Shown: positions 1,963-47,463 of the stretch, piece by piece
How the letters are laid out: the number at the start of each line of letters is the position of its first letter
Numbering within the stretch: the stretch's first letter is position 1
Assembly (NCBI GenBank): GCA_001643675.2
Contig: LSRY02000017.1
Location: 868,001 to 932,000 of the forward strand
Length of the DNA: 64,000 bases
Direction: 5' to 3'
Source: Monocercomonoides exilis PA203
Lineage: Eukaryota; Protista; Preaxostyla
The notes under the pieces: model-generated
Database searches by the model: none
What the model saw: only the letters and a program-made list of their open reading frames with translations
What the model was told of the DNA's origin: nothing
Made by a program: the position numbers and the translations under genes

Positions 1963-2218
1963 GAGTGATTATTTTTGAAATAATATATTTCTTTGGAATG
2001 ATTATTTTTTCGAGGTCTGATGTTATTGACGAGAGAATATTTATCGATATGTTCAATGCTTTGATATTGTTTGCTGAAAAAACATACGTTGCAAAAGAAA
2101 GACAGCGAGGTGCATAAATGTCATTATCAAAAATATTTGATTGATTTCCAAGTTATTCTGACAAATACAAAAATCGAAAAATAAAACAGAAAAAACATGA
2201 AATCAAAAAGAATCACCC
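1963..2218. mobile_element. MITE family A copy (256 bp, degenerate ~22-bp TIR, TSD ATAT/GTAT)
   Basis: Left GAGTGATTATTTTTGAAATAAT; right end reverse complement GGGTGATTCTTTTTGATTTCAT; removing it together with the adjacent B copy restores the transposase tail frame. Confidence 0.75.
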
Positions 2219-3701
2219 GTATCAACAATTTCTTCAGATTCTTCTTATTCAATTTCGTTTCCCTCTATTTCTTTTTCATCATCGTCATCATCATTTTCCA
2301 TTCAAAGGTGCTTAACGAGTTCAGAAAAGGTGTTGTCAAATGAAGATTTGACAAGAAAAAGAGTTTGATAAGCATGCATCAATCGAATGCGAGATCCAAA
2401 AGAAGGAAAAGTGCAACGTAAATGAAAACACAACCCCTCTATTGAATATGTGCATGCTCCTGTGTTTTTATTGAAAAATTGCCATTTGCGGCAAACTTTA
2501 AAATGCTTGTATCCCAGAGTCTCCATAATGTCGTACGTTCTCCATTCATCAGACATTATTGTTGTCCCTTCCTTAATGAACTTCTGTATCAATGGAATGA
2601 GTGTCTCTCTTTTTCTGTTTGGCACCACGACAATGAATCTTCCTCCAGTTCCTCCATCCTCTTTCCTCTTCACTCCTCCACAAATCCAACTTTGTTTTTT
2701 CTTTCTTCCACGATGAAATTTTCTTTTCCTCCAAACCGCTTCACAAATTTCCACAATTTTGCCATCTCTTCCAAAAGACATCTGCCTTTCATTCCATAAG
2801 TCAGCACATGTTTTTCTGATGGCACTTCACCAATAGCCCACTGTGCCTTCATCGATTAATAGCAACATTGCAATATTTTTATTATGAATTTTCATCCGTA
2901 ATACAAGAAAACAAGCAGAGTGATATCCAATTTAATTTTTGTTTTGCTGAATTTCGTATTGGAAAGGAAGCTTGTTTTTGTCTTGTACTTCGGACAGGCA
3001 TAATATCTGGGTGATTTTTTTTGAAATCAAAAAAAAAGATCAAAAATCGAAAAAATAAAATCTTTTGTGGTATTTATTGATCAAAGAGTTTAATTGAATT
3101 TTTGTAAGTTTTTAGCTTTTTAAACTGTAATATATATTTGTTTTATTGTTTTATTAAAAAAAAAACATACCTTTGTGTTTTGAAAGAAAAAAAATTTTTT
3201 GATCAAGTTTAAAAAAATATTTTGAAAATGAACATTCATAATTGCACGAATACATTAAATTTAATTATTTCAAAGGAAATCCAATGAGTTTTTTGTTTAT
3301 CCAGCTAAAAATTCATCACCAAGTTTCTGTTCCAGCCGTGCAGTTCAACGGACTCATCAAATGGAGATTGTGCTGAAAAGGAACCAACAATCAATCAGAA
3401 CGACTGTCAATCTCGTCATTTCTTTTTTTATTCTTCGAATAAAATGCTCTTCCCACTTCATTTTCAATTTACAGCTCCTCTTCCTTCTGTTTCGAATCGA
3501 TTTATCCAAATATTCCTTTAGAAAATACAGCCGATATAATTTTCTTTCATTTTCAGTACTTTCTGCTCCATTCTTCTCGCGATGTTCATCAATTACTCTG
3601 ACAACACTTGCATATCTCCGAAGAAACACGTGCTTTTTATTTTTTTCACCAAGTTCATCTGCTTCTTTGTTATCCAAAAAGTGTGCGAAGGAGCATGAAG
3701 A

Positions 3702-3905
3702 ATGGATGTGCATTTTGTATGTGAATCCCTTGTCACTTCTGTGAATGATTACTTATTCGCCTTAATGACAAGCATCACACAGATAAACAGCTCGGTTGTT
3801 GGATATGACAGAACAGATGCCTTTTGCATCCGAAATGTCGATTTGTTTATATTTCTCAAAGGGAATTTCGCTGGAAATGGATATGTGGATAATCATCTTG
3901 GAATC
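3702..3905 (+). pseudogene. Captured fragment of the beta-helix receptor family
   Basis: DVHFVCESLVTSVNDYLFALMTSITQINSSVVGYDRTDAFCIRNVDLFIFLKG aligns ungapped with DMYFVCESFVASVKEPLFSFMRNITQKDNSVVGHDRTEAFGDWNVDLFIFFDG of the 2978-aa ORF (~15490-15680). Confidence 0.85.
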
Positions 3906-4939
3906 AAGGAAGTGAATTGATGGCTATCAAAGATGCCCTGCAAGAGCACACACAATGCGAAGGAGCTTCTGAAGAAAGCGCAGAACATAAGGCAGAGACT
4001 TTTGAGTGAGCTGATTTGTCTGTGGATTGGTGTGTGTGAAAACTAAATGGAGGAATGGAGATTAGATAAAGTTGAAGAAGAAGAGGTAGCAACAATTGGA
4101 GAATGAATGGAAGTTCAGATGACGTTAAATTGAAGCGAACGATTAATCCTCTTCTTTTCGGTCATAGAAAATCTTCATTACTTCATTCACCACTCCTCAA
4201 ATATCTTTTTTTCTATATTTTTAATTAAATTTCATACTGACAGTGCCATTCGTTGTAAACGTTCGACCCCTTCTTTCATCTCTTTAACTTTCTCTATTCA
4301 TCATGAAACACTTTTTCCCAACAAATATCTGCTCAATCACATTTGTAACGATTATCCAATTAAACTTTTCCCTTTCTCCTTCCATATAGCAATCACATTC
4401 AACAAGAATAACTTTCTCTTCTTCTTCTTCAACTTCTACATTAACTTCTTCCACATTTATTACATCTCCTTCATCTCCTTCTATTATTTCTTCTTTTTCT
4501 TCTTCTTCTCCCTTTTCTCCCTCTTCTTTCTTTCAACACGTCAGAAAATAGTTCTTTATTCTCTTTTCTTTCTCAATTTGTACTTTCTAAATACTTTCTC
4601 ATTTCGCTCATATGCTGAATCTTCACTCTTCTGCGTCTTGTTGAAGCTTTGCGAAATTTTCTTTTCTTTTCTTTTACTTCCTCCTACGCTAAATGAGTTT
4701 AAATATTCGTTGAATCAGCTTCATCCAGTTATCTTCTCTTCTGTCTGCTCTTATTTAGCTTCTGTTCCAATGTTTTTGCATCAGCTTCATCTCTCTTTTC
4801 CTTTTTCTTATCTCTCATAAATATGTCTTCCACATTTAACTCATATTTATCATCATTATTATTTCTTTAATCATATCTTCTCCTTCCCTTCCTTCACTTC
4901 CTCTTTTTTCTTTTCAATCTCACCCTCCTAACAGATTGT

Positions 4940-7050
4940 CAAATTAGCTGCATTTTGTGTTGTGTTTCAGAAATATGACTTCTCACACCTGGAATAATAC
5001 CTTCCGTTAACATTTTTGCAATGCAGGGGTCATCTGCAGAAAGTTGCTGTTCTTCCGAAGCAAAAGTTGATAATTGATCTGGTGACAGGGTTGCAGGAGG
5101 AGAATATCGAAATGGAGATGTTTAACTTGTTGCTGTGGTGAATGTGCTGGACAACAAGAAGACAACGACCTGATGCTTCAGCTGTGCTTGCTGGACTAGC
5201 TGGTGCGAAAAATACGAATAGCTTCGCTGTTCTGGCCAAGAGAAAGAGAATCGTTTCATATGAAAATTCCATTGTTGTGTGTTATAAGTGATAATCATCT
5301 CGTTGTTGCCTAATGGGTTGCTGAAGAAGCCATGTTGCAGATGCGAAGTGCCTCTGCACATTGAGCATAGCTCAAGTGCGCTGAAGAGCGATAGCAGAAA
5401 ACTAATGCACTGCCAAGTGACAAGTGCGCACTTCTCTTGGTGATGGGGAAGAAGGAGGATGCGCAAGCTATGCCACTATTTCACTTGTATATGTGACTGA
5501 AGAGCTGATTGAGCGAGATGGCAGTAAAGAAGGAGTGAGTCATGCTGGAGTGGCTTCCCTGCTGATTTGGAACAGAAGAAGCAGAAGAAGAAGGAAGTGT
5601 GTACAGCAAGGGATCCGCCAAGGAGTCAGTAGAAGGAAGAGTGGGACAATACGAAGGAAAAGCGACAGCTGGTGAGGATGCAGTTGTTGAAAATAGCTGC
5701 AACAGCAATGAGAAAGATGTGGCGAAGTGAACAGGGACAAGATTTCCAGAGGTTCAATCGACTTTCACGTCAGCAAGGGAGATATGGGTGTCGAAGAAAA
5801 AGGAGGCAAAGATTCAGAATGCGTTGCTGATGGAAGGGGCGATGTGGAGTACGGCTGTGAAGAGTGAAGCGCAGGAGGCAAGCGGGGAGCAGCACTGTCG
5901 GGCAGAGGAGACGATGTCTTGGTCGACGAATATCTGCTGAACGCGTTTGAAGGTGATAAAGGAAACGAGGCAGACATCATGGTCGGGGTCGGTGTCGGGG
6001 TCGGTGTGGGAGGAGTCGGAGCCGCAGATGGAGGTGTTGGTGGCGAGGGAGGGATGGGTGAAGTCGAGGGAAAAGATGTCCTTTCCGAAGAAGGTGTCGT
6101 TCAGGCGAAGTGGAAGTTGAGGATGGAAAGTGGGAGATGGGGGCCGGCTGTGGACAGCTAGAATCCTCTAAGTTTGTCAAGGGTGCTCAGGTCCGCACTG
6201 GGCATGTTCCAGTTGAAATGATCTGCATCCATTTCCGCCTTCAGCTAACTCCCTGACACAAACATCTTTCTGCCCTTCCACGCATCGCATCTAGCAAACA
6301 CCACGTGCTCGAGGGCAAATTGCCTGGTTGCATTAGCCTCCCCCATCAACACCCCTCTGCCCAGGCCAGAGCTTTGAACCTGCCTCCATTTGTTAAAGCA
6401 GTTTCTTCTTTGAAGGACGAATCATAAATCAGTAGGACATCATCTGCCGCCAACTTTGCTGCAACAATACCATCTCTGGAATTCGTTTTGTTCCTCATTT
6501 CCTGCCCTGCCTCACATCTTCCAATCCTCGCCATCTTCACCTGCTCCCCTTCTCAACTCCACTTCTGTATATGATCAAAAATCATTTTGCTTCCCTTCAC
6601 AATGCTGCTGTCTGTGCACTCTGTCAGTAAAAATATGATACAAACCTTTTCGCCCAGTATTTCGAAGTCGCTCAGCAACAAACTTTCTGATCCGAGTATT
6701 TTCAGCTTGAAACTCAACCTCTCCTCATCTCCAAGTTGCAAGCTGCGACTTGTGTTGCACTATTAGCTTGACTGTATTGTCTTTGAGGCTGAGCAAGCTG
6801 TTCGATGAACCAAAAGCTGTCTAACTTTGGACTCAAAGATAAGTCAGAAGAATATTTATCATCAATTGATACGGAGTTGTTGGCGAATTTCGAAGATAAA
6901 TAATTGTTTTAAAACAATAATTGAAGAAAGGCAGTGGGCGAAGTTATCAGTCAGACAACATATGGTTAAACCAAAAAGGAGGAAGTGGAAGTAGTATCGT
7001 TGAAGAAGAAGCTTGAGGAAGATGAGAAGGAAGAAGAATGGATGTCTGTG
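4940..7050 (-). pseudogene. Degenerate, frameshifted fragments of receptor-family genes (cargo of the 3009-7673 element)
   Basis: ~6200-6345 translates FALEHVVFARCDAWKGRKMFVSGS*LKAEMDADHFNW, matching the family motif LSSISFSGCRAAIGKNMFVKSSSL..FAF; S/T/P-rich stretches resemble the receptor N-terminus; many stops; boundaries approximate. Confidence 0.65.
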
Positions 7051-8280
7051 AGGAAATCATAAATATGCTAAGGAAGTTTAAGATTTATCCGAAACTGAAC
7101 TTCTTGAATTGTGTTGCCTTTTCTTTTGCATTTTTAAAACACAATTTTTCAATGACATTTTTTGATCAGTTTATTTGGAAAATCACTTTTGGATATTCGT
7201 ATTATTTACAAAAACAAACACAACTCATTGTTTTTTTGATAGATTTAATGTGCAACAACACATTTGTGACACGAATGCTTTTGAAAATATGTTGTTTTCA
7301 GCAAATTACTAGAAAATTGAAAAACAAATTTCAAATTTACTTCTCAATAACATCATAAAACTTATTATTATATATAAAATTGATAAATTATGTATTGTGA
7401 TTATTGTTATCATGTTATATTAACGATTGAACAAGTATTATGTTCTTGTTTTTTCAGTTTTGATATTTCGTGAATTTTTTTATAATTTTTTTGAAAATAT
7501 GAAATAAAAACAATTGGAAACAAATTAATATCAACAAATAAATATTAATAATGATATATAAAACTTTAATTTTATGTAATTTCAAATAAAATTTTTCAAA
7601 TCAACCCCACCCTTAATGAAAATTTTTCATGATCAAACGTCGGAATTTTTTATGATATCAAAAAAAATCACCCATCTGTATTTTCCATTTTTGTAAATAT
7701 ATTTGTCGAATCTATGCTTTTTGCACACAGAATGCGATTAATTCCGAATATAATGAAGAACCAATCCCATGCTTCATCGTCATTATTAAACAAACTATTG
7801 AAATCGGATATTTCTTTTTTTTTTTAACGATGAGCTTTTCATCATGTTCTTTGAAATCAACTTTTATCAAAACCTGTAAAATGAAAAAAAAAATAAAATT
7901 TATTACGGGATTATTTTTATTTTATTTGATTTCATTTTGGAAACACTTTTCCGATACATAAAACTATTTTCATTATTATTATAATGTGCTGAAAAGACCT
8001 AATAATTAAAGTTTTGTGAATATAGAAAATGACGTTATCTTCGGATCAGACCCATATTCCGTGTTATCATTTCATTTTCGATGTATTTGGACAAAACTTC
8101 GCTTGAGAACCCACTCCCTGATATCGTTTCTGCCCTGATAATTCCTTCAACAAAAAAAGTGGTCTTTCCTTTTTCATGTGCGTAATTTATTGAAAGAGCC
8201 CATTTTTTTGATCGCTCATCTTATAACATTGAACCCGATTTCCGTTGTACTTCGGAAAGCTTGTTTTCTTCAAAATATAA

Positions 8281-8547
8281 GGGACAAAATATTTCACTTC
8301 AGGCATTTTCATTAAAAAATTATGCACATAAGATGAATTTTTTGTTATCAAAATATTTGAAAAAACGGGTTTGTTTTTTGAAATACATATGAGGTCACAA
8401 AACAGAATGTTATTATTTCAATGATGTTTGTTTACAGATATGAAAATCAAATTTTTTTTGAAATCTGATGAAGTTAAAAAATGTTATAAGTGAAACAATT
8501 TTTTCGAACTTTGTGCATAAAAAGCTTGAAAGTCCATATTTTCCCCC
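8281..8547. mobile_element. MITE family B, copy 2 (267 bp, TSD ATAA)
   Basis: ATAA|GGGACAAAATATTTCACTTCAGGC...AAAGCTTGAAAGTCCATATTTTCCCCC|ATAA. Confidence 0.88.
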
Positions 8548-9510
8548 ATAAAAAAGGACAGATATTTGGTGTTAATTTTTCACAAAACGATAAACAATTT
8601 CAAATTGTATAATGTTCGAAAAATGAAGCAAAGCTGGTTTGGAATTACTTAAAGAAGAGCAGTCTTCAAATATCAATGAACCTGAACATTAAATATTCGT
8701 GACTTTTCAAAAAGATTAATTCAAAATAAAAAAAAATCTTCTTCATTATGAACTCTTGTTTTTTTTTTTTTTTTTTTTTTTTGGAAAAGTTGACTTCGTT
8801 TTGAAAAAAAACAGTCTTTTTCGTGTTTATCCTTGCGAAAAAAGATGAGGTTGCTTTCTGTTCGTTCAATCTCAAAAAAATATTGAGAAATCTGCTTCGA
8901 ATAAAAAGATATAGACAAAACACAAAAACTTCAACCACTAAAAAAATCTCACAAAAACATGGATGTACAAAATAAATAGTCAAAAAATAAAAATATCTTC
9001 AAAATGTTGCTGGTATAAAACAAAAACAAAACGAAACGAAAAAATGAAATTTCATCCCCAACCAACAAAAACAGATTGCAACCATGAAAAAAAAGGAATA
9101 CGCAAAATATAAAAAGAAGAAAGTGAAAGAGAACTTCAGTGAAAGAACAGCATTCAATCATTGCTCCTCCCCAATTGTCACAATGATTGAAAATGGTGCT
9201 CAGCAATAAAATCACAAAGTTAATACAAAACAAAATGCAATAATATAAATATTAGTATTACACAGCTTTAACAATTTGTTTGTAAATCCAATTCGCATTT
9301 TCTGCAATCTTTCAGAAGACCACAAGTCTCGAAAGATTCAATCCAAAATTCATGAACATACACACAAAACATCATACTCATTCAATTTGGTTTTCACTCC
9401 ATTCCTTGAACAATCTCTCCGTTTTCAACTTCCAACTGAACTCTTCAAAAGAAAAAAAAAATGAACAAATGACTTTATCAAATACCTTGAAACATCCAGA
9501 CCGTTTCCAC

Positions 9511-12500
9511 TCATCGAATCAACGAATCTCCACTCTCAGCTTCACTTTCCCCACTTCCATCTCTATCCCCCGACCCAACCTCCAGCCCAATCGCATCAGT
9601 CACTGTGACCATCACAGCCCCGGCCGGGAAGTGCCCAAACAGCTCCCGCTTCACATCCATCAGCCCTGGCCTCTCCTCTCCATTCTGCAACAAGCACGCT
9701 TTCACCCCCTTGCTCAGCTCGCATCCCTCAATCTCCTCTGCCCCAGGCCTCTCCCCATTCACAATCTTCTGCCCTGCCACCTCTGCCTCATACTCCCCAA
9801 ACGGGATCTGGAGCGTCAGACACTCCCACGCCATCATCCCAATCGAAAACACCACCGACTTCTTTGTCGCTCCCATCTTCTTGTTCATCAGCAACTCAGG
9901 TGCCTTCCACCTCAGACACTCTTTTTTGAAATCTTCCTCATCCTCAAAGGCAGATGAAGGAAGGGATTCATCATCGCTGGCAGATGTCGCAATAGTTGAT
10001 GAAGAGATGGATGAGGAATCTGAACTATCATCAGAAGAAATGTCTGAATGCATCACGATGCAGATGACCATGCGTTCAGAGAAAAGGACAATGTGAGGGC
10101 TCAAATTAGAAAGCGGTTGAAGTGGAATTTCCATTTCATCAAATGAATGGAGTGCGAGATTAGCCACCCAGAACAGGATTTGTGCAGCTGTATATTCTCT
10201 CTCCTGCAAACTCCCAATTGCCATATCTTTTTTCTCATTTCTCCCATGAAGCAACATGAACAATGAATCTCTTAAATCCACAATCAGCTTCTCATGAGGC
10301 GAGGAGCAAGCCATTGCATCCACCAAGTTCGACATCGATGAGGTGGTTGGACACAGATCCTCTCCACGAACAAATGTTGAATCAGTATCTGAAGTTTCTG
10401 TGGTTGAAGTGGATGAAACAGAGGGAGATGGCGTTCTCTTTCTTGTCTCTTCTTCCTCAACCTTCTCCAATGCCCATTCAGGAATCTTATCTGAATCTTT
10501 CCCCAGAATGTATTCTGTGGATCCGCTTTCAGATAGAAGATGCTCAGATGATTCAGAATGCTGCACATTCGTATCATATATTCTCTTTTTCATTCTCTCA
10601 TCATTCTTCCTCTCTGCCTCTCTCTCCGCTCTTCTCCACTGTTCCTCAGGCGACATCTCCATCGTCACCATCTCAATAAGCTTTGGATCTTTTTTGATGT
10701 TATCGTTCACTATCTCTCTCAAATCTTTCGCTTCATTCTTTGCCTTTCTCCATCGAAAAGCCAGAACAATTGATACAATGAGCACAATCATGAGAATGAT
10801 TGCCATGATGATCACAATGATCGGCCAAAATGATTTTTGTTCTCTTCCTCCTTCAACAATCCTTTCATTTCTATTCGCCTTTGTTTCGCTCGCATTCTTC
10901 AGAACAAATGGCTCTGTTGAGGAAGGAGATTCTGTGTCGCCAAACAAAATATGCACACTCACTTCAATTTCATTTCCACAACTGCTGATGAAAGCCTTTT
11001 CAACACTCCCTTCTGCTTCTCTTTCTGACAAGAATCCATTTGAATCAAAATCATGTTTTTCAATCTCTTTCTCTTCTCCTTTTCTCTTCACAACTGAGAA
11101 GGTCAGGTTGCATGGAACAAGAAGCAATCCTTTGAATGTCAGCTTCATTCTATCTGTCTCTTCTTTTGCTTCCACACTCTCCAGAACAGGAATAAAGAAT
11201 GATGAATCTCTTTCTGAAACAATCCCTTCAAAACTGCACCCATCATTCAGCATCCAAAGTGGGGAGTTATCTTTTACTCCATCTCCTCCTTTCAAACTCA
11301 TCACATTCAATGTTCCAGAATCTGAGCAGATGATGTTTCTCCTCAATGACGGATATCTCTCAATTGATGGATTATTGTTCAAAAATTCTCCTTTTTCAAT
11401 AATCACATTTCCTCCACTCATTGTAATTCCACCTTCTGGTGAATTTGAAATTGTTGTATCTTTCATCATCACAGAACTCTTCACAACATCCACAATAGAT
11501 CCATCCCATCTGCACATCTCTTCCCCTTCATTCAAATATTGTTCATTTCTTTCCTTTTCACTCCCATATAAAATGCAACTGTCCATTTTCACATCCAAAC
11601 AATTCTCCAATTTCATCAATTTTCCTTTTGTTGTCTTTGAACTGACTCCGCCCATTGTGCAATTTGTAAATTGCATTGTCTTTTTCATTGACAAGCAAGA
11701 TATCAAAGATTCTTCATTTCCTTCAACTGTGATATTTTCAACCTTTAATCTGTCCATATTCAATTGACCGAATTCATTAATATCTAATAGAGGTTTTGAA
11801 ATTGTTGAATTGGAAATCGTTAATGAATCAATGACTGATGGAAGTGGTGATGAAAGATATAATGCAGATTCTTGAAGAATAAGATTTGATGCTATGCATC
11901 CATCAAGTTGTAATTCTCCTTTTTTCATGAATATAATGTGAAATGGAATATTTGCAAAAGCTTCATTTCTTTCTCCATCCGTCAATTGTTTTGAGGTGAA
12001 TGAACAATTCATTATTTCAAGAATACCACCTTCTGGTGATATTAGTGATTCATGTGAAGAAATGAAATTCGAATCAAACACAAATCCTATTCTCAACATT
12101 GAAACTGATCCATCTGTTGCCACCAAAGTCTCTCTTGTTCTTTCAATCCCTGATTTCACTTCAACTTCGCACATTTCCCTGCTCTTCGAACTCAAACTCA
12201 TTTCCTTCAGATTTAATTCTCCTCCAATCACACTCTCCTCAACAATGAACATCAGACTCATGAAATCTGAAGTCAGATGCATCAGCCCATAATCAATCGA
12301 AGCACATGGAAGTGTGTTTGTTCCACATTGTCTGTCGTCCGTTCCATTCAAGCTGCTCACAATGATCGTGTCACTCTGATAGATCGTCACAAAATTAATC
12401 AGATTCGTATCATTAGGATATTCACAAGAATCTCTCCCATATATCGCATTGAAACGAGTGTAATGGCCTTCTCGAAGATCAAACTGGAATTGGCTTTCAT

Positions 12501-15500
12501 TTATCTGCGACGTGATGTTGAAACATTCGATGAAAACATCATTTCCAACTTTTGCTGTGTTCGCACTGAATTTCATTCCCACAAATGTGAAATTTAGAAA
12601 CCCTGTTTCCTTTGTTGCCAGATACACTCCTCCTCCTTTTCCTGAACTTATACTACAGCTGCAATGGCTGATTGTTGAGCCAATCATCTTCATTGATCCA
12701 GATGCACCCAATGTGAAGAATATCGCCCCTCCTTTTTCACTTGTTTCTGCTTTGTCTTCTGCGATGTTGCTCTCATTCACAACCAAACAAATCTTATTCT
12801 CACTCTTTGATTCCAAAATGCTCGCTCCATTGTCGCTCCTCTTCACTCCTGAAAATGATGATTTCTCAATTTGAAGATTTATTTTCTCATTTTTGTTTTT
12901 CAATTTTGATCCTGGCTCAGATTTCTTGATTGACAAAATGCATTCTCCACTTTCATTCAACAATTCCACTCGAACATTCACCAAATGGCAAACAACTCCA
13001 GAATTGCGAATGGTAAATATACTGTTTCCAACATTGCACGATTCCAAAGACAAATCATTCACTTCCACACTTCCTCCAACCACATCCACAAACACACAAT
13101 TATATCCATTGTTCACTTCTGCTTCTGAATGGAATGAGCATCCAGTTATCACCAAATCTCCATTTCTATTTGAAATAATCGTTTTGGCTGAGTTGTCAAA
13201 TCCCGATGTTAGTTGAAGTTGGATATTCCTCAATTCGAGGTGAATATCATTTTCCATGAAATATTCCAGTTGACTTTCAATTGCCTTTTCAAAATTCAAA
13301 ATTGTTTTTGTATCTTCTTTTCCCATCTTTTCACTCTTTTTGATCTGATAATTGGACATGTTGAATGAATCTCGAATGATAGTTGATCCTTCAATTTGTA
13401 TTGTTTTCATTTCATCTCCCTCTTTCATGTTTTCCATCCCTTTCCACATCGTGAAGCATGGCTCTTCCTCACTTCCACATCTTGCAACATCAAATCCTTC
13501 AGATGAGATAAATATCTCAAATGAGCTGTATGGAACGAGGAACATGAATAAATCCTTTTCTTGATGAAAATCATCACTTCCTACAAACAAATTTCCATCA
13601 TTTGCCATTGATGAATAATCGAACTTGAATGACTCATTCGTCACAGAAATGTTGAAATCCTTTCCCAAAATGAACATATTCTTTCCAAAAGTTGCATTGT
13701 TGCTATCAAACGTTACGCCTTCCAAAAGAAATGGTGTTTCATTCAAACAATTTTGGCAATCCAAATGCAAAAATCCTCCTTTTCCATTTGTTGTTAAAAG
13801 TGAACAAGATGAAGCATTTGTCGATTTGATCTCCAGTTTTTCATTCCCTTTCAATGTCATTTTTGTAACGCCTCCTTCTTCGCTAACTGTGTTCGTAATG
13901 CTTGAAAAGTTACTGTTTTCAATCAAAACAGAAGAAGCCATCACCAGTGGTGAAATGACAAATGAAGAATCTACCAAACAACATCCTTTCAATGCGCAAC
14001 TTCCACTTGTTGTGGTTATCAACGAGTATTGAATGATATCTGATGATTGGATATCAAATAAACAGTTTTCGAATTGAAGAATTCCACTCGATGAGATCAA
14101 CGAATTCATATTTGATGCAAATTGGCTTGGAACCTGCATCTTCAAAGACAACAAGCTGAGTGAAACTGTTGATGAAATTACAGATGAAGACGATGCAGAA
14201 TCCTCATTTATTGTCTCCTCAAAATGAACAAGTCTGTGCTTCACATCATCTCCCTCATTCACACACCCATCAATCACAAGTGCATCAGTGAAGGAATAAA
14301 AATCTTCGATTGTTCCTTCATCTCTCACATTCACTTTCCTTTCTCCTTCTGTCTCGCTTTGGTCAAGATTGCCAATTCCACTTTTCAATGATTTGCATGG
14401 GAATTTTTCACTTCCACATCCCAATGTGTCATGCCCATTCTTCGACACAGACACAACCATCCACTTCAAAGAAACAAGAAACACTCGGAGATCCATTTTT
14501 CCATATTTCCCATCTTCTCCAACAAATGCATTTCCATCATCCTTGTGTTCCGTGCAATCAAATGCAAAACGCTCTGTATTCACAGTATTCACCAGACTGC
14601 TGCTCTTCACAAACATGTTCTTTCCAATTGCTGCCCTGCATCCAGAAAACGATATTGACGAAAGCTGAACTCCTCCTTCATTCAAACTGCAATCCAGATA
14701 TATCCCTCCTCCTTTTCCTCCATTGTTCTCATTCTCACAAACACATCCAACAAATGAACTATTTTCAAGTGCCATAAATCCTCCATTCTTCAGAACGATC
14801 TTCAGTGCTCCTCCTTCTTTGCTCTTCTCTGACAATGCCCCGTTAATTGTACTTCCATTCATCACCATCCCAATTCCCAAACTGCCTCCAAATACGGCTG
14901 CCTTTCCCTCTACTGCCACTCCACTATCAATCTCCAATCCTTTCAATGTGCAATTCAATAACTTCACTTTGTATTCCAGTTCATTCACATTTGCCGAGGA
15001 AAGCGTAATTGAAAACAATGAAACTGTTGATTTCACATCTGAAATCTTCACAAATTCCAGTTCAACCATCTTCCCTGTCGATTTGATCAAGAAAAATTCA
15101 ATTGTGTTTTGCTTCCCTCCAACCACTCTCATCTCACAGTTCGACATGTGCAACTTGCCATTTGCACTGCTCGATTCGATCACTGCTGAGATTGTTCTGA
15201 TAAAACTTGATGGAACAACAATCCCAATGAACTGTATTTCTGTCAGTGATGATGATTTCAATACACATTCTTCAGATCCATTCACATCTCTTTGACATTC
15301 AATCTTTACAATTGTCTCCTCTTTTGCCTTTATACACATTTCCCCCACATCTATACATCCCATCATCAACGAATTTGAAATTACAATAATCTCTTTTTTA
15401 GCATTTGTTTTCTTTAAACGGTTCATTCCATTATTAACATTCTTACAAGGTGCTTTCTCCAGACCACAATATACCTCCTCCTCTCCGGATGTTCCATCCA

Positions 15501-18447
15501 CATAAATTGTATCATCAAAGTATCCATCGAAAAATATGAATAAATCGACATTCCAGTCACCGAATGCCTCTGTTCTGTCATGCCCAACAACCGAGTTGTC
15601 TTTCTGAGTGATATTTCTCATGAAGGAGAACAAGGGCTCTTTCACAGAAGCGACAAACGATTCGCACACAAAATACATATCTCTTCCGACACAGGCCTTA
15701 TTGGCTGAAAACACGATATTGGTGATGGAAAAGGTTGTGGATGACACTTGTGAATCGTCCTTGAACTCGATCATGAGAGCACCGCCTCTTCCTCCAGAAT
15801 TTGTATCCTCGCTCACAAAGCAGCTGGAGAAGGTGGTGTTGCTCACTGAAAACGCATTGGCAGAGGCGGATGATGCGAATGAGATGCACCCGCCATCTGT
15901 GGCAGTTTGTTGGCTGAACTGTTCTGAGTTGATGTTGGTGATGGTGCAGTTGGCGAGGGAGAGGGAGAGGGCAGGGGAGGTGGCAGAGGAGAGGACACAG
16001 CTGGCTGGAGTGGCTGTGGAGGTGATATCGGTGATGCTGGAGGAGTTGAGGGTGAGTGGAGTGGTGAGGGAGATAAGGAGGAAGATGCTTTGGCTGCTGA
16101 GGGAGAGTTGGGTGATTGCTGTGTGGTTGAGGGCGATGGAGCCAGCAGTGAGGAAGAAGAGGGGAGTTGTGATTGATGATGAAGATGGGGTTGTTCCGGT
16201 GATGGTGGTTGTGTTGAGGTTGAGGGAAGGGGAGTTATCGGAGAGGTGGAAGAGGATGGGAGTGATTTGGTTTGTGGAGTTGTGGGCGATGGCGAGGGCA
16301 GAGACTGTGAGGGAGCCCTGAGTCTGTTGGAAGAGGGCAGACGAGGCAGATGGATCTGGTGAAGAAGAAGATGATGATGATGATGAAGGTTGAGGAATGC
16401 TACTGGATGCAATGGTTGTGGTAGTTGTTCCGTTTCCTGTGATTCTTGTATTTGGAGCACGAAACGTGAGTGTCTGAGCTGGAGTGAAAGAGGAGATGAG
16501 GAGAGTGAGGGAAGTATCTTTGAAAAATACAAAGCCATAGAGGGCGTATTCAATTGTGGCGCATGGGGTTTGTTGAGAACTTCCACAGGCATCGATATCT
16601 TCCCCGTTGTTTGCTACGATTTTATTCTGGCTGATAAAGGGGAGCCAGCCATTATATTCAGCATTGTCTGCTTGTCCATTATTCCACACTCTTTTAGTTG
16701 GGGTTGTTGAGCCACATTGCTGGAATGGAGATTGAGTGATATCACTTCCGTAAAAGAACACATCATTCCCTCTGCCATTTGTTGCAGCGTTGCCATCGAA
16801 GAAACAGAAAGCGATGAATTTTACTCCATTCATCCAGGAATAAGGAGGATAAAAACACATTGCAGCACCACCGTAGGTAGTTGGATTTTCGACTTTGTTG
16901 TTAATGAACTGGCACTCTTGAAGTAAATATTGAAGTGAATTTTGTGGTGGAGGGTAATGAAACGTGACTGCGCCAGCCGCATCACCTCCGGTATTTGCAA
17001 TGCAGGAACAATTTTTGAACAAGAATTTTGCATCTGATGGCATGCTATCGAGTACGAAATACCAACCAGTTCCATGATTGCCTTTTATTTCACAACTTTC
17101 AACTCTGTTATCTGAGAAAGAATAAACAGAATTTGATTGTGGCCCACCAATACAATTTGCTCCTCCATGAGCAGCTGAACAGTTTGTGAAATTTGATTTT
17201 GTGATATCAATTTTCAAAAAATTTCCGCAGAACAATGCTCCACCTTCCCAGCCACCTGTGCAAGAACAATTGTTGAACGAACAAGAAGTGACTGTGAGAT
17301 TTGCATTTGCACAATTGATACAAAGTGCACCTCCACGACTTGATTCACTTTTTGAATTTTCCCATTCGCACCACTCAAAGATATAGCAATTCAAATCAGT
17401 AAAGGTCAATCGACTTAATTCCTTTCTTTGAGATTCAGAACCGTTATATCTTACAAGATCATTTGATAAAGATCGAGTTTGGTGAAGAAAAGAGGCATTG
17501 AATGCAGAGAGCGAAGTGGATGGACTGTTGAGGGAAGGGAGAATGGCACCATCAACGGGGTTGTGGGTGTGGAGGAAGATGGTTGAGTGAATGGAGATTG
17601 ATGAGTGAAGAGAAAAGGAGGGGATTGTGTTTGTATTGATGTTGGTGGCAGTGGTTGTGGTGAATGAGTTGTGCTGGTGTGTGGTGTTTGTGGTGATTGT
17701 GGTTGTGGTGGTGGATGGAGTGAGTGAGTGTGAGGAAAGTGGTGTTTGTGTTAAATGTGGTGAGAGAGAAGAGATGTTGGAGAAGAGTGTGCTTGAGAGA
17801 TGGAGATTGAGGTGGATTTGGGGGTGAATAGGGGAAGAAGAGGAAAAAAGGAAGGGCTGGACGAGGGAGACGAAAGAGGAGAAAGAGGAGTGGGAGATGG
17901 AGAAGGAGGTGGAGACTGGGGAGTGGGAAGAAGAGAAGAGATAATTTGGGGTGGAGAAGAGGGGGAAGGAGAGGATGGCCGGTTGAGGGATGAGGAGGGA
18001 GAAGTTCGTGAGGGAGAGGGAGCTGTGTGCAGAGAGGAAGAGTGAGTGGTGCTTGTGATTGTGATTGTGGTGTGTGTGGATTTGGCAGGCAGAGGAGCAG
18101 ATGGAGGCAGCTGAGTGGTGTTGGGCAGTGAGGAGTGGGCAACAAGTGAGAGGCACCATGGTGAGATTGCTCACGCACAACGAGCTGTTGACGATAACAA
18201 GACTTGTTTCAGCACAACACAACCGGTTGCCAGCTGCATTCCCGATCACTTCCCTTCGAATGGAATAATTATTATTATATGCTCCTTTTTCGTCTGAAAT
18301 TCTTATCTTGCCTTTTGGCATCTCCTCATCGCATATTTGTTGAATTTGCCTTTTTGCAATGCCTCCGCAGCTGCAGCTGTGGACAACCAGCAACAACAAT
18401 GCAGATAAATGGAATGCAGCTTTCATGTTGGTGGAGCACCTCACCAT
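9511..18447 (-). CDS. Giant intronless type I membrane protein: signal peptide, repeated beta-helix (pectin lyase/Pmp-like GGA) modules, one TM helix, degenerate TK/TKL-like kinase C-lobe
   Basis: 2978-aa ORF; hydrophobic leader MKAAFHLSALLLLV (likely start 18426); repeated GGA/GGG..F..N.A..G.D.F and CG....PC motifs; TM FWPIIVIIMAIILMIVLIVSIVLAF followed by RWRK; RWKAPELL, SVVFSIG..WE..T..IPF, RP motifs. Confidence 0.88.
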   Translation of the reverse strand: MVRCSTNMKAAFHLSALLLLVVHSCSCGGIAKRQIQQICDEEMPKGKIRISDEKGAYNNNYSIRREVIGNAAGNRLCCAETSLVIVNSSLCVSNLTMVPLTCCPLLTAQHHSAASICSSACQIHTHHNHNHKHHSLFLSAHSSLSLTNFSLLIPQPAILSFPLFSTPNYLFSSSHSPVSTSFSISHSSFSSFVSLVQPFLFSSSSPIHPQIHLNLHLSSTLFSNISSLSPHLTQTPLSSHSLTPSTTTTTITTNTTHQHNSFTTTTATNINTNTIPSFSLHSSISIHSTIFLHTHNPVDGAILPSLNSPSTSLSAFNASFLHQTRSLSNDLVRYNGSESQRKELSRLTFTDLNCYIFEWCEWENSKSESSRGGALCINCANANLTVTSCSFNNCSCTGGWEGGALFCGNFLKIDITKSNFTNCSAAHGGANCIGGPQSNSVYSFSDNRVESCEIKGNHGTGWYFVLDSMPSDAKFLFKNCSCIANTGGDAAGAVTFHYPPPQNSLQYLLQECQFINNKVENPTTYGGAAMCFYPPYSWMNGVKFIAFCFFDGNAATNGRGNDVFFYGSDITQSPFQQCGSTTPTKRVWNNGQADNAEYNGWLPFISQNKIVANNGEDIDACGSSQQTPCATIEYALYGFVFFKDTSLTLLISSFTPAQTLTFRAPNTRITGNGTTTTTIASSSIPQPSSSSSSSSSPDPSASSALFQQTQGSLTVSALAIAHNSTNQITPILFHLSDNSPSLNLNTTTITGTTPSSSSITTPLFFLTAGSIALNHTAITQLSLSSQSIFLLISLTTPLTLNSSSITDITSTATPASCVLSSATSPALSLSLANCTITNINSEQFSQQTATDGGCISFASSASANAFSVSNTTFSSCFVSEDTNSGGRGGALMIEFKDDSQVSSTTFSITNIVFSANKACVGRDMYFVCESFVASVKEPLFSFMRNITQKDNSVVGHDRTEAFGDWNVDLFIFFDGYFDDTIYVDGTSGEEEVYCGLEKAPCKNVNNGMNRLKKTNAKKEIIVISNSLMMGCIDVGEMCIKAKEETIVKIECQRDVNGSEECVLKSSSLTEIQFIGIVVPSSFIRTISAVIESSSANGKLHMSNCEMRVVGGKQNTIEFFLIKSTGKMVELEFVKISDVKSTVSLFSITLSSANVNELEYKVKLLNCTLKGLEIDSGVAVEGKAAVFGGSLGIGMVMNGSTINGALSEKSKEGGALKIVLKNGGFMALENSSFVGCVCENENNGGKGGGIYLDCSLNEGGVQLSSISFSGCRAAIGKNMFVKSSSLVNTVNTERFAFDCTEHKDDGNAFVGEDGKYGKMDLRVFLVSLKWMVVSVSKNGHDTLGCGSEKFPCKSLKSGIGNLDQSETEGERKVNVRDEGTIEDFYSFTDALVIDGCVNEGDDVKHRLVHFEETINEDSASSSSVISSTVSLSLLSLKMQVPSQFASNMNSLISSSGILQFENCLFDIQSSDIIQYSLITTTSGSCALKGCCLVDSSFVISPLVMASSVLIENSNFSSITNTVSEEGGVTKMTLKGNEKLEIKSTNASSCSLLTTNGKGGFLHLDCQNCLNETPFLLEGVTFDSNNATFGKNMFILGKDFNISVTNESFKFDYSSMANDGNLFVGSDDFHQEKDLFMFLVPYSSFEIFISSEGFDVARCGSEEEPCFTMWKGMENMKEGDEMKTIQIEGSTIIRDSFNMSNYQIKKSEKMGKEDTKTILNFEKAIESQLEYFMENDIHLELRNIQLQLTSGFDNSAKTIISNRNGDLVITGCSFHSEAEVNNGYNCVFVDVVGGSVEVNDLSLESCNVGNSIFTIRNSGVVCHLVNVRVELLNESGECILSIKKSEPGSKLKNKNEKINLQIEKSSFSGVKRSDNGASILESKSENKICLVVNESNIAEDKAETSEKGGAIFFTLGASGSMKMIGSTISHCSCSISSGKGGGVYLATKETGFLNFTFVGMKFSANTAKVGNDVFIECFNITSQINESQFQFDLREGHYTRFNAIYGRDSCEYPNDTNLINFVTIYQSDTIIVSSLNGTDDRQCGTNTLPCASIDYGLMHLTSDFMSLMFIVEESVIGGELNLKEMSLSSKSREMCEVEVKSGIERTRETLVATDGSVSMLRIGFVFDSNFISSHESLISPEGGILEIMNCSFTSKQLTDGERNEAFANIPFHIIFMKKGELQLDGCIASNLILQESALYLSSPLPSVIDSLTISNSTISKPLLDINEFGQLNMDRLKVENITVEGNEESLISCLSMKKTMQFTNCTMGGVSSKTTKGKLMKLENCLDVKMDSCILYGSEKERNEQYLNEGEEMCRWDGSIVDVVKSSVMMKDTTISNSPEGGITMSGGNVIIEKGEFLNNNPSIERYPSLRRNIICSDSGTLNVMSLKGGDGVKDNSPLWMLNDGCSFEGIVSERDSSFFIPVLESVEAKEETDRMKLTFKGLLLVPCNLTFSVVKRKGEEKEIEKHDFDSNGFLSEREAEGSVEKAFISSCGNEIEVSVHILFGDTESPSSTEPFVLKNASETKANRNERIVEGGREQKSFWPIIVIIMAIILMIVLIVSIVLAFRWRKAKNEAKDLREIVNDNIKKDPKLIEMVTMEMSPEEQWRRAEREAERKNDERMKKRIYDTNVQHSESSEHLLSESGSTEYILGKDSDKIPEWALEKVEEEETRKRTPSPSVSSTSTTETSDTDSTFVRGEDLCPTTSSMSNLVDAMACSSPHEKLIVDLRDSLFMLLHGRNEKKDMAIGSLQEREYTAAQILFWVANLALHSFDEMEIPLQPLSNLSPHIVLFSERMVICIVMHSDISSDDSSDSSSISSSTIATSASDDESLPSSAFEDEEDFKKECLRWKAPELLMNKKMGATKKSVVFSIGMMAWECLTLQIPFGEYEAEVAGQKIVNGERPGAEEIEGCELSKGVKACLLQNGEERPGLMDVKRELFGHFPAGAVMVTVTDAIGLEVGSGDRDGSGESEAESGDSLIR

Positions 18448-45946: not shown

Positions 45947-46151
45947 GGCTGATCCTTTTTGAAATCATACTTTCGTTCGAGTTTTGATCAAAAAATTTTT
46001 CTTAAAGGGATTCTAAAAAAATTAACTTCAACTGCTAATACATGTTGTTCATGATGTTGTTATTGCAGAAACAAATTTTTTCAAAAATCCCATTGAGGTA
46101 GAGATTTTGATCAAAACTCGAACGAAAGCATGATTTCAAAAAGGATCAGCC
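45947..46151. mobile_element. MITE family A copy (205 bp, ~47-bp TIR, TSD ATTT)
   Basis: ATTT|GGCTGATCCTTTTTGAAATCATACTTTCGTTCGAGTTTTGATCAAAA ... TTTTGATCAAAACTCGAACGAAAGCATGATTTCAAAAAGGATCAGCC|ATTT. Confidence 0.9.
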
Positions 46152-46420
46152 ATTTATTTTGCATTAGTTTTTTCTTTTCTTTTCTTTCTTTCTTTCTATT
46201 TTTGATTCAATGTGATAAACCAGATTTGTTATTCGTGAATAATCCTCAAAGGTTAAAGCATCAATTCTGTCTCTCGATAAATATAAATTTAAATCCTTCT
46301 CATTGCTATCTTAATTTCAACTTTTTGTTCAACTTTTTCATTATTAAAGAGAATGTGACAGCTTTTTTATTCTCACACACACATTAAATATTAGTCATTA
46401 CCATTTATGAATAGTCATAT

Positions 46421-46686
46421 GGGGGGAAATACGGACTTTCAATCTTTTTTTGCACAAAGTATTGAAAAATTGCTTCGCTCATAACTTTATTTCGCTTTCT
46501 CTGATTTCAAATTTTATAAGATTTTCTTTCGGAAAACATGTATCGTTGAAATCATAACATGGAGTTTTGTATCATTCCGCGTATGTCAAAAAATGGACCC
46601 ATTTTTATTGTGTTTTTTGTTTTCAAAAAGTCAAAGAAAGTGCATCATTTTTTTATGAAATTACCTGAAGTGAAATATTTTGTCCC
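46421..46686. mobile_element. MITE family B, copy 3 (266 bp, inverted relative to copies 1 and 2, TSD ATAT)
   Basis: ATAT|GGGGGGAAATACGGACTTTC...CCTGAAGTGAAATATTTTGTCCC|ATAT. Confidence 0.88.
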
Positions 46687-46730
46687 ATATGTCTATATTT
46701 AAAAAATATTTTCCTTTCTTTTTCTTTTCA

Positions 46731-46890: not shown

Positions 46891-47125
46891 AGAAAATAAT
46901 ACGAAAGATATTTTTCATTAAAAAAAATTCGACGCATAGGTGATCTTTTTTGAAAACATGCTTTCATCCAAAATAAGAAAAAAATTTTTTTCCAATCAGA
47001 TTTTTTTAGATAAAAATTAGCTTCAACTGTTTGCACATTATATTTATATAATAATTTCCAGAGAATTGAAAAATTTAACAAATCACATTGAGATATCATT
47101 TTTTGTTCAGAAATTAAAAACGTTT

Positions 47126-47395
47126 GGGGGAAAAAATGAAACTTCAAGCTTTATTATTGAAAAAATTTACACTTTTTATTGACTTTTTGTGATTTTTAAA
47201 AAAATGAATAAAGTGAGTTCATTTTTTGAAAAACGAGCGAGGTCACAAAACATTATGCAATAACTTCATTAATATCTTTTTATAGATATGAGAATTTGTT
47301 TCATTTTGTAATTTGAGAAAGGTAAATCAACTTATGAGTGAAATAATTTTTATGTCCTTTGTGCAAAAAAAGCTTGAGAATCTGTATTTTCCCCG
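47126..47395. mobile_element. MITE family B, copy 4 (270 bp, diverged, TSD GTTT/ATTT)
   Basis: GAGGTCACAAAACA...TTTGTGCAAAAAAAGCTTGAGAATCTGTATTTTCCCC matches copy 2. Confidence 0.78.
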
Positions 47396-47463
47396 ATTTG
47401 TGATTTATAAAACAATCAACTTTTAAGTCGTTTGATCAAAATATTTTGTTGTGTCTTCAATTA

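Follow-up and report, generated by a model that had tools for sequence, protein, structure and literature searches.

A decayed Pack-type DNA transposon carrying fragments of two surface-receptor subfamilies in Monocercomonoides exilis, with a probable affinity to Sola elements

Non-autonomous DNA transposons whose interiors are built from host gene fragments have been described as Pack-MULE and Pack-CACTA elements of plants and as gene-fragment-carrying GingerRoot elements (PMC6839031). These elements bear the terminal inverted repeats (TIRs) of their families, are flanked by target-site duplications (TSDs), encode no transposase, and are represented in RNA. A different set of elements, the Sola1 MITEs (miniature inverted-repeat transposable elements) of insects (PMC3845634) and the Sola2-Fanzor chimeras of dictyostelids (PMC3627910), has short TIRs, 4-bp AWWT TSDs, and common ends that enclose different interiors. 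In Sola1, a 4-bp AWWT duplication is described as a hallmark (PMC3845634, with reference to Bao et al. 2009), and it has also been reported for Sola2, including chimeric elements with common ends and wholly different interiors (PMC3627910). Here we describe an element that resembles both sets, located at positions 3009-7673 of a 64,000-nucleotide stretch of the genome of the oxymonad protist Monocercomonoides exilis (hereafter the window, C11:868001-932000 of the assembly, with contigs designated by C and a number), and the transposon family to which it belongs, here called the GGGTGA family after the start of its TIRs.

The resemblance to the plant elements and to GingerRoot lies in the family ends and TSDs, the lack of a transposase, the interior of host fragments and the presence in RNA, and the differences are several. 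The interior of the GGGTGA element is a chimera of two parent subfamilies, and its TSD is 4 bp long at an AWWT target, as opposed to the 9-11 bp or 3 bp of Pack-MULE and Pack-CACTA. A single acquisition has been amplified to dozens to hundreds of copies and has diversified, while the plant elements mostly represent many independent low-copy captures, and the host is an oxymonad rather than a plant. Sola1 MITEs carry nothing and Sola2-Fanzor chimeras carry a Fanzor gene, whereas the payload of the GGGTGA family, linked to Sola by its TSD signature, consists of fragments of host surface receptors. The literature searched contained no account of Sola elements capturing gene fragments, nor of such capture in metamonads. 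The Oxford Nanopore Technologies assembly of M. exilis PA203 spans about 82.3 Mbp in 101 contigs (PMC8767320), and the genome searched in this work comprised 82,301,135 bases in 101 contigs. In the genome paper, 35% of the assembly was assigned to 'unclassified repeats', many of which overlapped the expanded protein-tyrosine-kinase family, and its authors guessed that these were misidentified gene families (PMC8767320).

We consider it highly probable that the unit at 3009-7673 of the window represents a dead copy from a family of non-autonomous cut-and-paste DNA transposons, most likely of the Sola type. The element is of the Pack type: it has the TIRs and TSDs of its family, no transposase, and chimeric fragments of host genes that have moved together with the ends. 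The preliminary description of this DNA had already proposed a Pack-type transposon with captured host fragments, and had named loci with the same cargo junctions and different TSDs as the sign of mobilization with cargo; such loci were found, at least 13 in number. It had also put the element forward as a candidate for an undescribed system, which the TSD signature does not bear out, pointing as it does to a probable Sola-type family.

The 4665-bp unit begins with GGGTGATTTTTTTTGAAATCAA and ends with ATGATATCAAAAAAAATCACCC, with ATCT on both flanks. Its TIRs start with GGGTGA and are 28 nt long, with 26 of 28 positions matching, and a repeat finder returned nearly the same arms (3008-3036 and 7646-7674, 29 nt, 93% complementary). 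The extent of the unit, the TIRs and the perfect ATCT duplication thus stand as previously described, with the correction that the TIR is 28 bp with two mismatches and not 21 bp with one. A 22-nt TIR pattern matched three times in the window, where shuffles gave an expectation of 0.00. As both ATCT and the ACAT found at other copies are non-palindromic and present as direct repeats, they are target-site duplications that lie outside the inverted repeat. The insertion site is about 160-230 bp upstream of a minus-strand open reading frame (ORF) at 2302-2852. Its neighbour on the other side is the gene for a 2978-aa receptor (3' end at 9511), and the site is downstream of the stop codon of this gene by about 1.8 kb. 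The element had been thought to have landed inside another gene; when it is removed in silico, all frames across the AT-rich junction (18-25% GC) are at most 113 aa long, so this part of the description is not supported. Insertion into an untranslated region or an intron may nevertheless have taken place, as the genome contains introns.

Comparison with other copies provides the evidence that the whole unit has transposed. At least 13 diverged copies occur on different contigs, with 59-94% pairwise identity, and all have the same order of left arm, (+) receptor block, (-) receptor block and right arm. A genome search with the whole unit returned relatives of full or nearly full length on C40, C47, C7, C26, C60, C34 and C63, and more diverged relatives on C13, C1, C8, C45 and C14. 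The window copy has its nearest relative on C40 (88% identity); identity in the closest pairs reaches 92-94%. Homology to the window copy breaks off at 3005-3009 on the left and at 7673-7678 on the right, which are the tips of the TIRs, and the flanks are therefore unrelated between copies. Perfect 4-bp TSDs were present in all nine sequenced copies (ATCT in one, ACAT in two, AATT in one and ATAT in five, one of these five with a mutated right tip). Nearly all copies also have the same breakpoint of the (+) receptor block, at positions 6014-6019 of the slice 9511-18447 that contains the neighbouring receptor gene, while three stop at 5929-5984 and two run slightly beyond it. Shared junctions, differing TSDs and a common breakpoint together indicate that the cargo was captured once and was then transposed with the element.

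Members of the family are laid out as a TIR of 22-28 bp, arms of about 220 bp (left) and about 400 bp (right), and a variable payload between the arms. The A-type payload consists of a fragment similar to the 2978-aa receptor (+), a fragment of another receptor subfamily (-), and element-specific sequence around both. A B-type payload class (loci L026 and L030-L033) has only the left portion in common with A-type copies, and this portion includes the (+) block with the same breakpoint. Across the genome, the 22-nt TIR pattern gave 305 exact matches and its reversed-pattern control gave 0. An ANNT flank was present at 302 of the 305, and among the first 100 listed, 85 had an AWWT flank (ATAT 55, ATTT/AAAT 24 and AATT 6, the others being ACAT/ATGT 11 and ATCT/AGAT 4). 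Searches with the arms yielded first-look candidates, by which we mean the matches of an initial genome search, a subset of which was scored. The left arm had 271 such candidates (40 scored, 81-94% identity) and the right arm 257 (40 scored, 76-84% identity). The family is put at roughly 270 copies.

GGGTGA units fall into two size classes of about 5-6 kb and 12-24 kb, the large ones being known from coordinates only. Where TIRs could be paired at 4-7 kb, the flanks on the plus and minus strands are reverse complements of each other, as in the ATTT/AAAT pairs C1:2516291-2521606, C8:623776-628233, C10:598517-603911 and C19:266118-271780 and the ACAT/ATGT pair C15:1079211-1084882. Two of the large pairs, C1:1192419-1212177 and C12:264881-284002, both have a matching, non-palindromic ATTT TSD, from which we conclude that units of 19-20 kb with GGGTGA ends are real. 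Further pairs of TIRs 19-24 kb apart include C11:761813-781627 (coordinates only). None of the 64 top-scoring matches of the receptor family lies inside the large pairs listed, and there is accordingly no sign that whole receptor genes are carried as cargo.

The interior of the window copy (Table 1) had been described as a patchwork of five coding-like pieces in both orientations. Searches with tblastn confirmed the receptor homology and resolved it into two blocks; five separate pieces are not supported. A (+) homologue of the neighbouring receptor at 3702-3905 was correctly recognized and lies within block 1, and a supposed (-) piece at 3905-4130 falls inside the same block, of which it is the antisense. 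Block 1 of the window copy is a single tblastn match to the 2978-aa ORF (9511-18447, minus strand), with 36% identity and with stops; in better preserved copies it corresponds to residues 776-1021 with 58-72% amino acid identity. Nucleotide identity of block 1 to the gene of the neighbouring receptor is 75-87%, and the block has 320 first-look candidate loci in the genome. Block 2 is closest to a receptor-family gene on C29, with 43-67% amino acid and 75-78% nucleotide identity in the window copy and 65-80% nucleotide identity across copies, and all copies have the same internal gap of roughly 0.9 kb relative to that gene. Every A-type copy, even the most diverged, has both blocks with their order and orientation unchanged. 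Block 1 closely resembles the receptor in the window and aligns weakly (23-30%) with the C29 gene, and the reverse is true of block 2, which identifies two parent receptor subfamilies.

Comparison with other copies also clarifies the segments around the blocks. The right part of the decayed middle segment, from about 5130 to 5477, is a continuation of block 2, and in other copies the homology of block 2 reaches approximately residues 698-758 in the C29 gene. For 4190-4880 the genome search yielded no host parent, the matches being element copies plus a low-complexity repeat at about 4417-4530. The segment at 6733-7269 has matches at 11 places in the genome, all in or beside element copies. In six loci (L023-L025, L028, L034 and L035) a longer (+) receptor block takes the place of the 3233-3578 spacer, giving a mosaic pattern between subfamilies.

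Table 1. Coordinates of the GGGTGA element and of its small relatives in the window
Feature	Position	Strand	Evidence or remarks
MITE-sized GGGTGA family member, 256 bp	1963-2218	+	TIRs GAGTGATTATTTTTGAAATAAT and GGGTGATTCTTTTTGATTTCAT; flanks ATAT and GTAT
Left TSD copy, ATCT	3005-3008		Same 4 nt after right end
Left TIR, starts GGGTGATTTTTTTTGAAATCAA	3009-3036	+	93% complementary pair; genome matches; shuffle control
Left arm, AT-rich subterminal, common to whole GGGTGA family	3009-3232	+	Present in all A-type and B-type copies
Spacer	3233-3578		Common only to L021, L022 and B-type L026, L030-L033
Cargo block 1, decayed receptor fragment	3579-4181	+	Residues 890-1073 of neighbouring 2978-aa receptor; tblastn E 1e-22
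Decayed middle segment with glutamate/lysine-rich low-complexity stretch (about 4200-4900, minus strand)	4182-5477	-	Stops in all frames
Cargo block 2, decayed fragment of different receptor subfamily	5478-6732	-	Closest is C29 gene (L037); tblastn E 1e-36 to 2e-45
Element-specific segment beside right arm	6733-7269		No host parent found
Right arm, AT-rich subterminal, family-wide	7270-7673	+	Arm search of genome
Right TIR, GGGTGATTTTTTTTGATATCAT on minus strand	7646-7673	-	End reading, repeat pair, shuffle control
Right TSD copy, ATCT (AGAT on minus strand)	7674-7677		Matches left TSD
MITE of sister family, 205 bp	45947-46151	+	TIR GGCTGATCCTTTTTGAAATCAT; TSD ATTT

The parent family itself comprises hundreds of intact ORFs. 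A search with the last 696 aa of the 2978-aa receptor gave 1957 first-look candidates, and the top 64 of these, at 75-88% identity, lie almost without exception in intact frames with lengths of about 2300-3100 aa. The C29 gene has frames of 1405 and 1205 aa and the same kinase match as the 2978-aa receptor, for which the Pfam match is confined to the C-terminal lobe of the kinase domain (residues 2839-2936). Outside GGGTGA ends, at L039:4121-5493 and L040:3802-4868, there are also decayed fragments of receptors with about 73% identity to element positions 4876-5962; these may be receptor pseudogenes or cargo that belongs to a different repeat family.

No copy contains a long ORF. The longest open frame of the window copy is 127 aa and a Pfam search with its ten longest ORFs gave nothing significant, in agreement with the preliminary description of an element that encodes no transposase. 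No ORF of more than 247 aa overlaps any of the full-length copies examined for ORFs, and a majority consensus of eight copies, built only for an ORF search, has no frame of more than 203 aa. Third codon positions of the receptor frames account for a fraction of 0.35-0.39 of the copy-to-copy differences, compared with 0.31-0.36 in control segments (0.33 being even), and this near-even spread over codon positions indicates that the cargo has decayed almost neutrally since its capture.

Contigs from RNA libraries (two runs of one study) match the element at 3931-4220, 5318-5697, 6206-6365 and 6405-6590 with 0 mismatches. Over the arms (2700-3230 and 7302-7832), which are the deepest part in the DNA runs, RNA depth is 0 with the exception of 0.55 in one bin of one run. 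Contamination with DNA would favour the arms, and the RNA of the interior therefore probably arises by transcription from within. Nothing was found to indicate that the interior has a function. In both RNA runs, one contig joins position 5590 to 7015, omitting 1424 nt and adding 2 extra letters; with a shorter side of 24 nt, this joint is too weak to be called either a splice or a deleted copy.

The AWWT duplications and the genomic context suggest that the GGGTGA family is probably of the Sola type. A Pack-MULE in the strict sense was rejected, the TSD being 4 bp and not 9-11 bp and the MULE domain PF10551 not being found in the genome. Similarly, a piggyBac element would target TTAA and not AWWT, and PF13843 was not found in the genome, though this search was silent in its control genomes too. 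A relationship to Maverick/Polinton or Ginger elements was set aside as well, the rve domain PF00665 having given one sub-threshold match in the genome. At 4665 bp, the window element also exceeds the size of a MITE, which is under about 800 bp.

In the mechanism that we propose, the TIRs would be bound by a Sola-type DDD transposase encoded at another place in the genome, which would excise the element and insert it at an AWWT target, duplicating 4 bp. The receptor fragments would have been copied once into an ancestral element, for example by template switching during repair of the excision gap, with the (+) block already in place when the A-type and B-type payloads split. Several waves of amplification of this composite element would have followed, and its cargo would since have evolved almost neutrally.

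A possible source of such a transposase is a family of USP-type ORFs with 276 first-look candidates, 69 scored places, and intact frames of 916-1142 aa. At one of the B-type loci (L032:4130-6043, minus strand, corresponding to C1:2667129-2669042), a 647-aa open frame has a Pfam UCH (ubiquitin C-terminal hydrolase, USP) domain; it represents the N-terminal part and ends 6 bp from the left tip of the B-type element. A frame truncated at the element tip shows that a GGGTGA element inserted into a USP-type gene, and hence that the family was active after USP-type elements arrived. At two other loci, C13:1309092 (+) and C53:259544 (-), a 934-aa open USP-type ORF is situated on the inner side of a perfect 21-nt TIR and points towards it, at distances of 2865 and 2863 bp, respectively (coordinates only). 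This combination of ORF and TIR is the best candidate for an autonomous relative of the GGGTGA family. The two TIRs are without the canonical left-arm and right-arm motifs. The left-arm motif accounts for 26 of 38 GAAATCA-type TIRs but for neither of the two beside USP-type ORFs, and the right-arm motif gave 0 matches adjoining GAAATCA-type TIRs. A search for homologous proteins with the USP-domain ORF returned no match.

Several observations weigh against this account of the element and are best considered together. No transposase was found inside a GGGTGA TIR pair among the pairs listed, and 0 of the 69 scored places of USP-type genes lie inside the listed GGGTGA TIR pairs of 19-26 kb. The lead from C13 and C53 is based on coordinates and could equally reflect a nested insertion that was copied, and what assigns the family to Sola is its TSD signature together with its genomic context. 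The gap-repair route of capture is a step that we infer. With regard to transcription, the RNA contigs are unstranded and from one study, zero depth over AT-rich arms is a weak signal, and two short segments of the interior are also uncovered.

These points leave room for a real cargo-carrying transposon of a non-Sola superfamily, be it a further group that makes 4-bp TSDs or an undescribed one, to which the abundant USP-type genes would be unrelated. The absence of a transposase from the listed pairs is what such an element would predict, as is the finding that intact-length USP-type genes on C1-C20 have no exact-pattern GGGTGA TIR within 20 kb, save the one at C13:1309092. We nevertheless judge this unlikely, because the ANNT/AWWT target fits the published signature of Sola1 and Sola2, because domains of the piggyBac (with silent controls), MULE and rve-type (Ginger, Maverick) transposases were not found in the genome, and because a USP-type ORF is present about 2.86 kb inside a perfect TIR at two loci with near-identical spacing. 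A different question is the direction of transfer, as the receptor-like blocks might be remains of the element's own genes, passed from the transposon to the receptors or left from an element that once encoded a surface protein. The presence of the (+) block in very many elements, and its fixed distance from the left end in A-type and B-type alike, would be expected from such an origin. Against it, the host counterpart is an internal, in-frame part of the intact ORFs of 2300-3100 aa found among the 1957 receptor candidates, while the pieces in the element are sharply broken, derive from two subfamilies in opposite orientation, and have stops in every copy and in the consensus; we regard an origin within the element as very improbable.

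Finally, the preliminary description had allowed that the cargo might have entered a small MITE already in place at the locus, and the unit could in principle be an assembly artefact or a segmental duplication. The window does contain MITE-sized relatives with similar ends, and the DNA contigs, which bridge neither element junction by at least 31 nt, offer no independent read-level check. However, the same interior and the same junctions recur at no fewer than 13 loci with different TSDs and unrelated flanks, and neither local insertion, misassembly nor duplication of a block can explain the unit. Later insertion of cargo into a resident MITE is refuted by this comparison, and misassembly is implausible for a structure that recurs in many copies with TSDs, so that we give explanations of this kind practically no credence and retain a transposon family that moved with its cargo.

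Small elements with related ends were also found in the window. The 205-bp MITE differs from the right end of the large element at 4 of 22 TIR positions and aligns with it over about 65 nt of subterminal sequence, in keeping with the earlier observation that small and large versions have ends in common. A separate MITE family of about 270-280 bp, at 1691-1958, 8276-8550, 46415-46690 and 47125-47405, has ends GGGACAAAATAT...ATATTTTACCCC and ATAT flanks, and several GGG...CCC / AWWT MITE families therefore coexist in the window. The member at 1691-1958 adjoins the 256-bp GGGTGA-type MITE, the ATAT between them being common to both.

Recombinase genes of other types were observed in the loci sequenced for comparison. 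An intact 564-aa transposase of the pogo/Tigger type (DDE_1, CENP-B_N, HTH_Tnp_Tc5) at L029:7214-8905 (minus strand, C20) is part of a 5.6-kb insertion, which interrupts an A-type copy near element position 4215, and a 424-aa ORF of the Tc1/mariner type (DDE_3) is present at L028:7630-8901 (+). A 473-aa ORF at L039:6663-8081 (-), outside any GGGTGA element, has a weak match to tyrosine recombinases (Phage_integrase); no tyrosine recombinase was seen in the arms or ORFs of the window copy.

A more far-reaching role has been suggested for such elements, in which they would feed the diversification of the receptor family. No evidence for this was found, all copies being decayed. It is conceivable, though we think it a long shot, that GGGTGA/Sola elements make up a system for the repeated uptake, recombination and expression of receptor modules, shaping the diversification or expression of receptor kinases (about 2000 candidate loci) by ectopic conversion or by antisense or small RNAs from oppositely oriented cargo, and that it accounts for much of the 35% of unclassified repeats.

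Our findings add metamonads, and a probable Sola-type family, to the known range of Pack-type gene capture. A TIR and an AWWT target that are both defined provide an assayable substrate for the unusual USP-domain candidate transposases of M. exilis. A family of GGGTGA elements with receptor-kinase fragments explains part of the unclassified repeats that overlap the protein-tyrosine-kinase family, and counts of the receptor-kinase family, together with the evolutionary inferences drawn from them, must separate transposon-borne pseudogene pieces from real genes.

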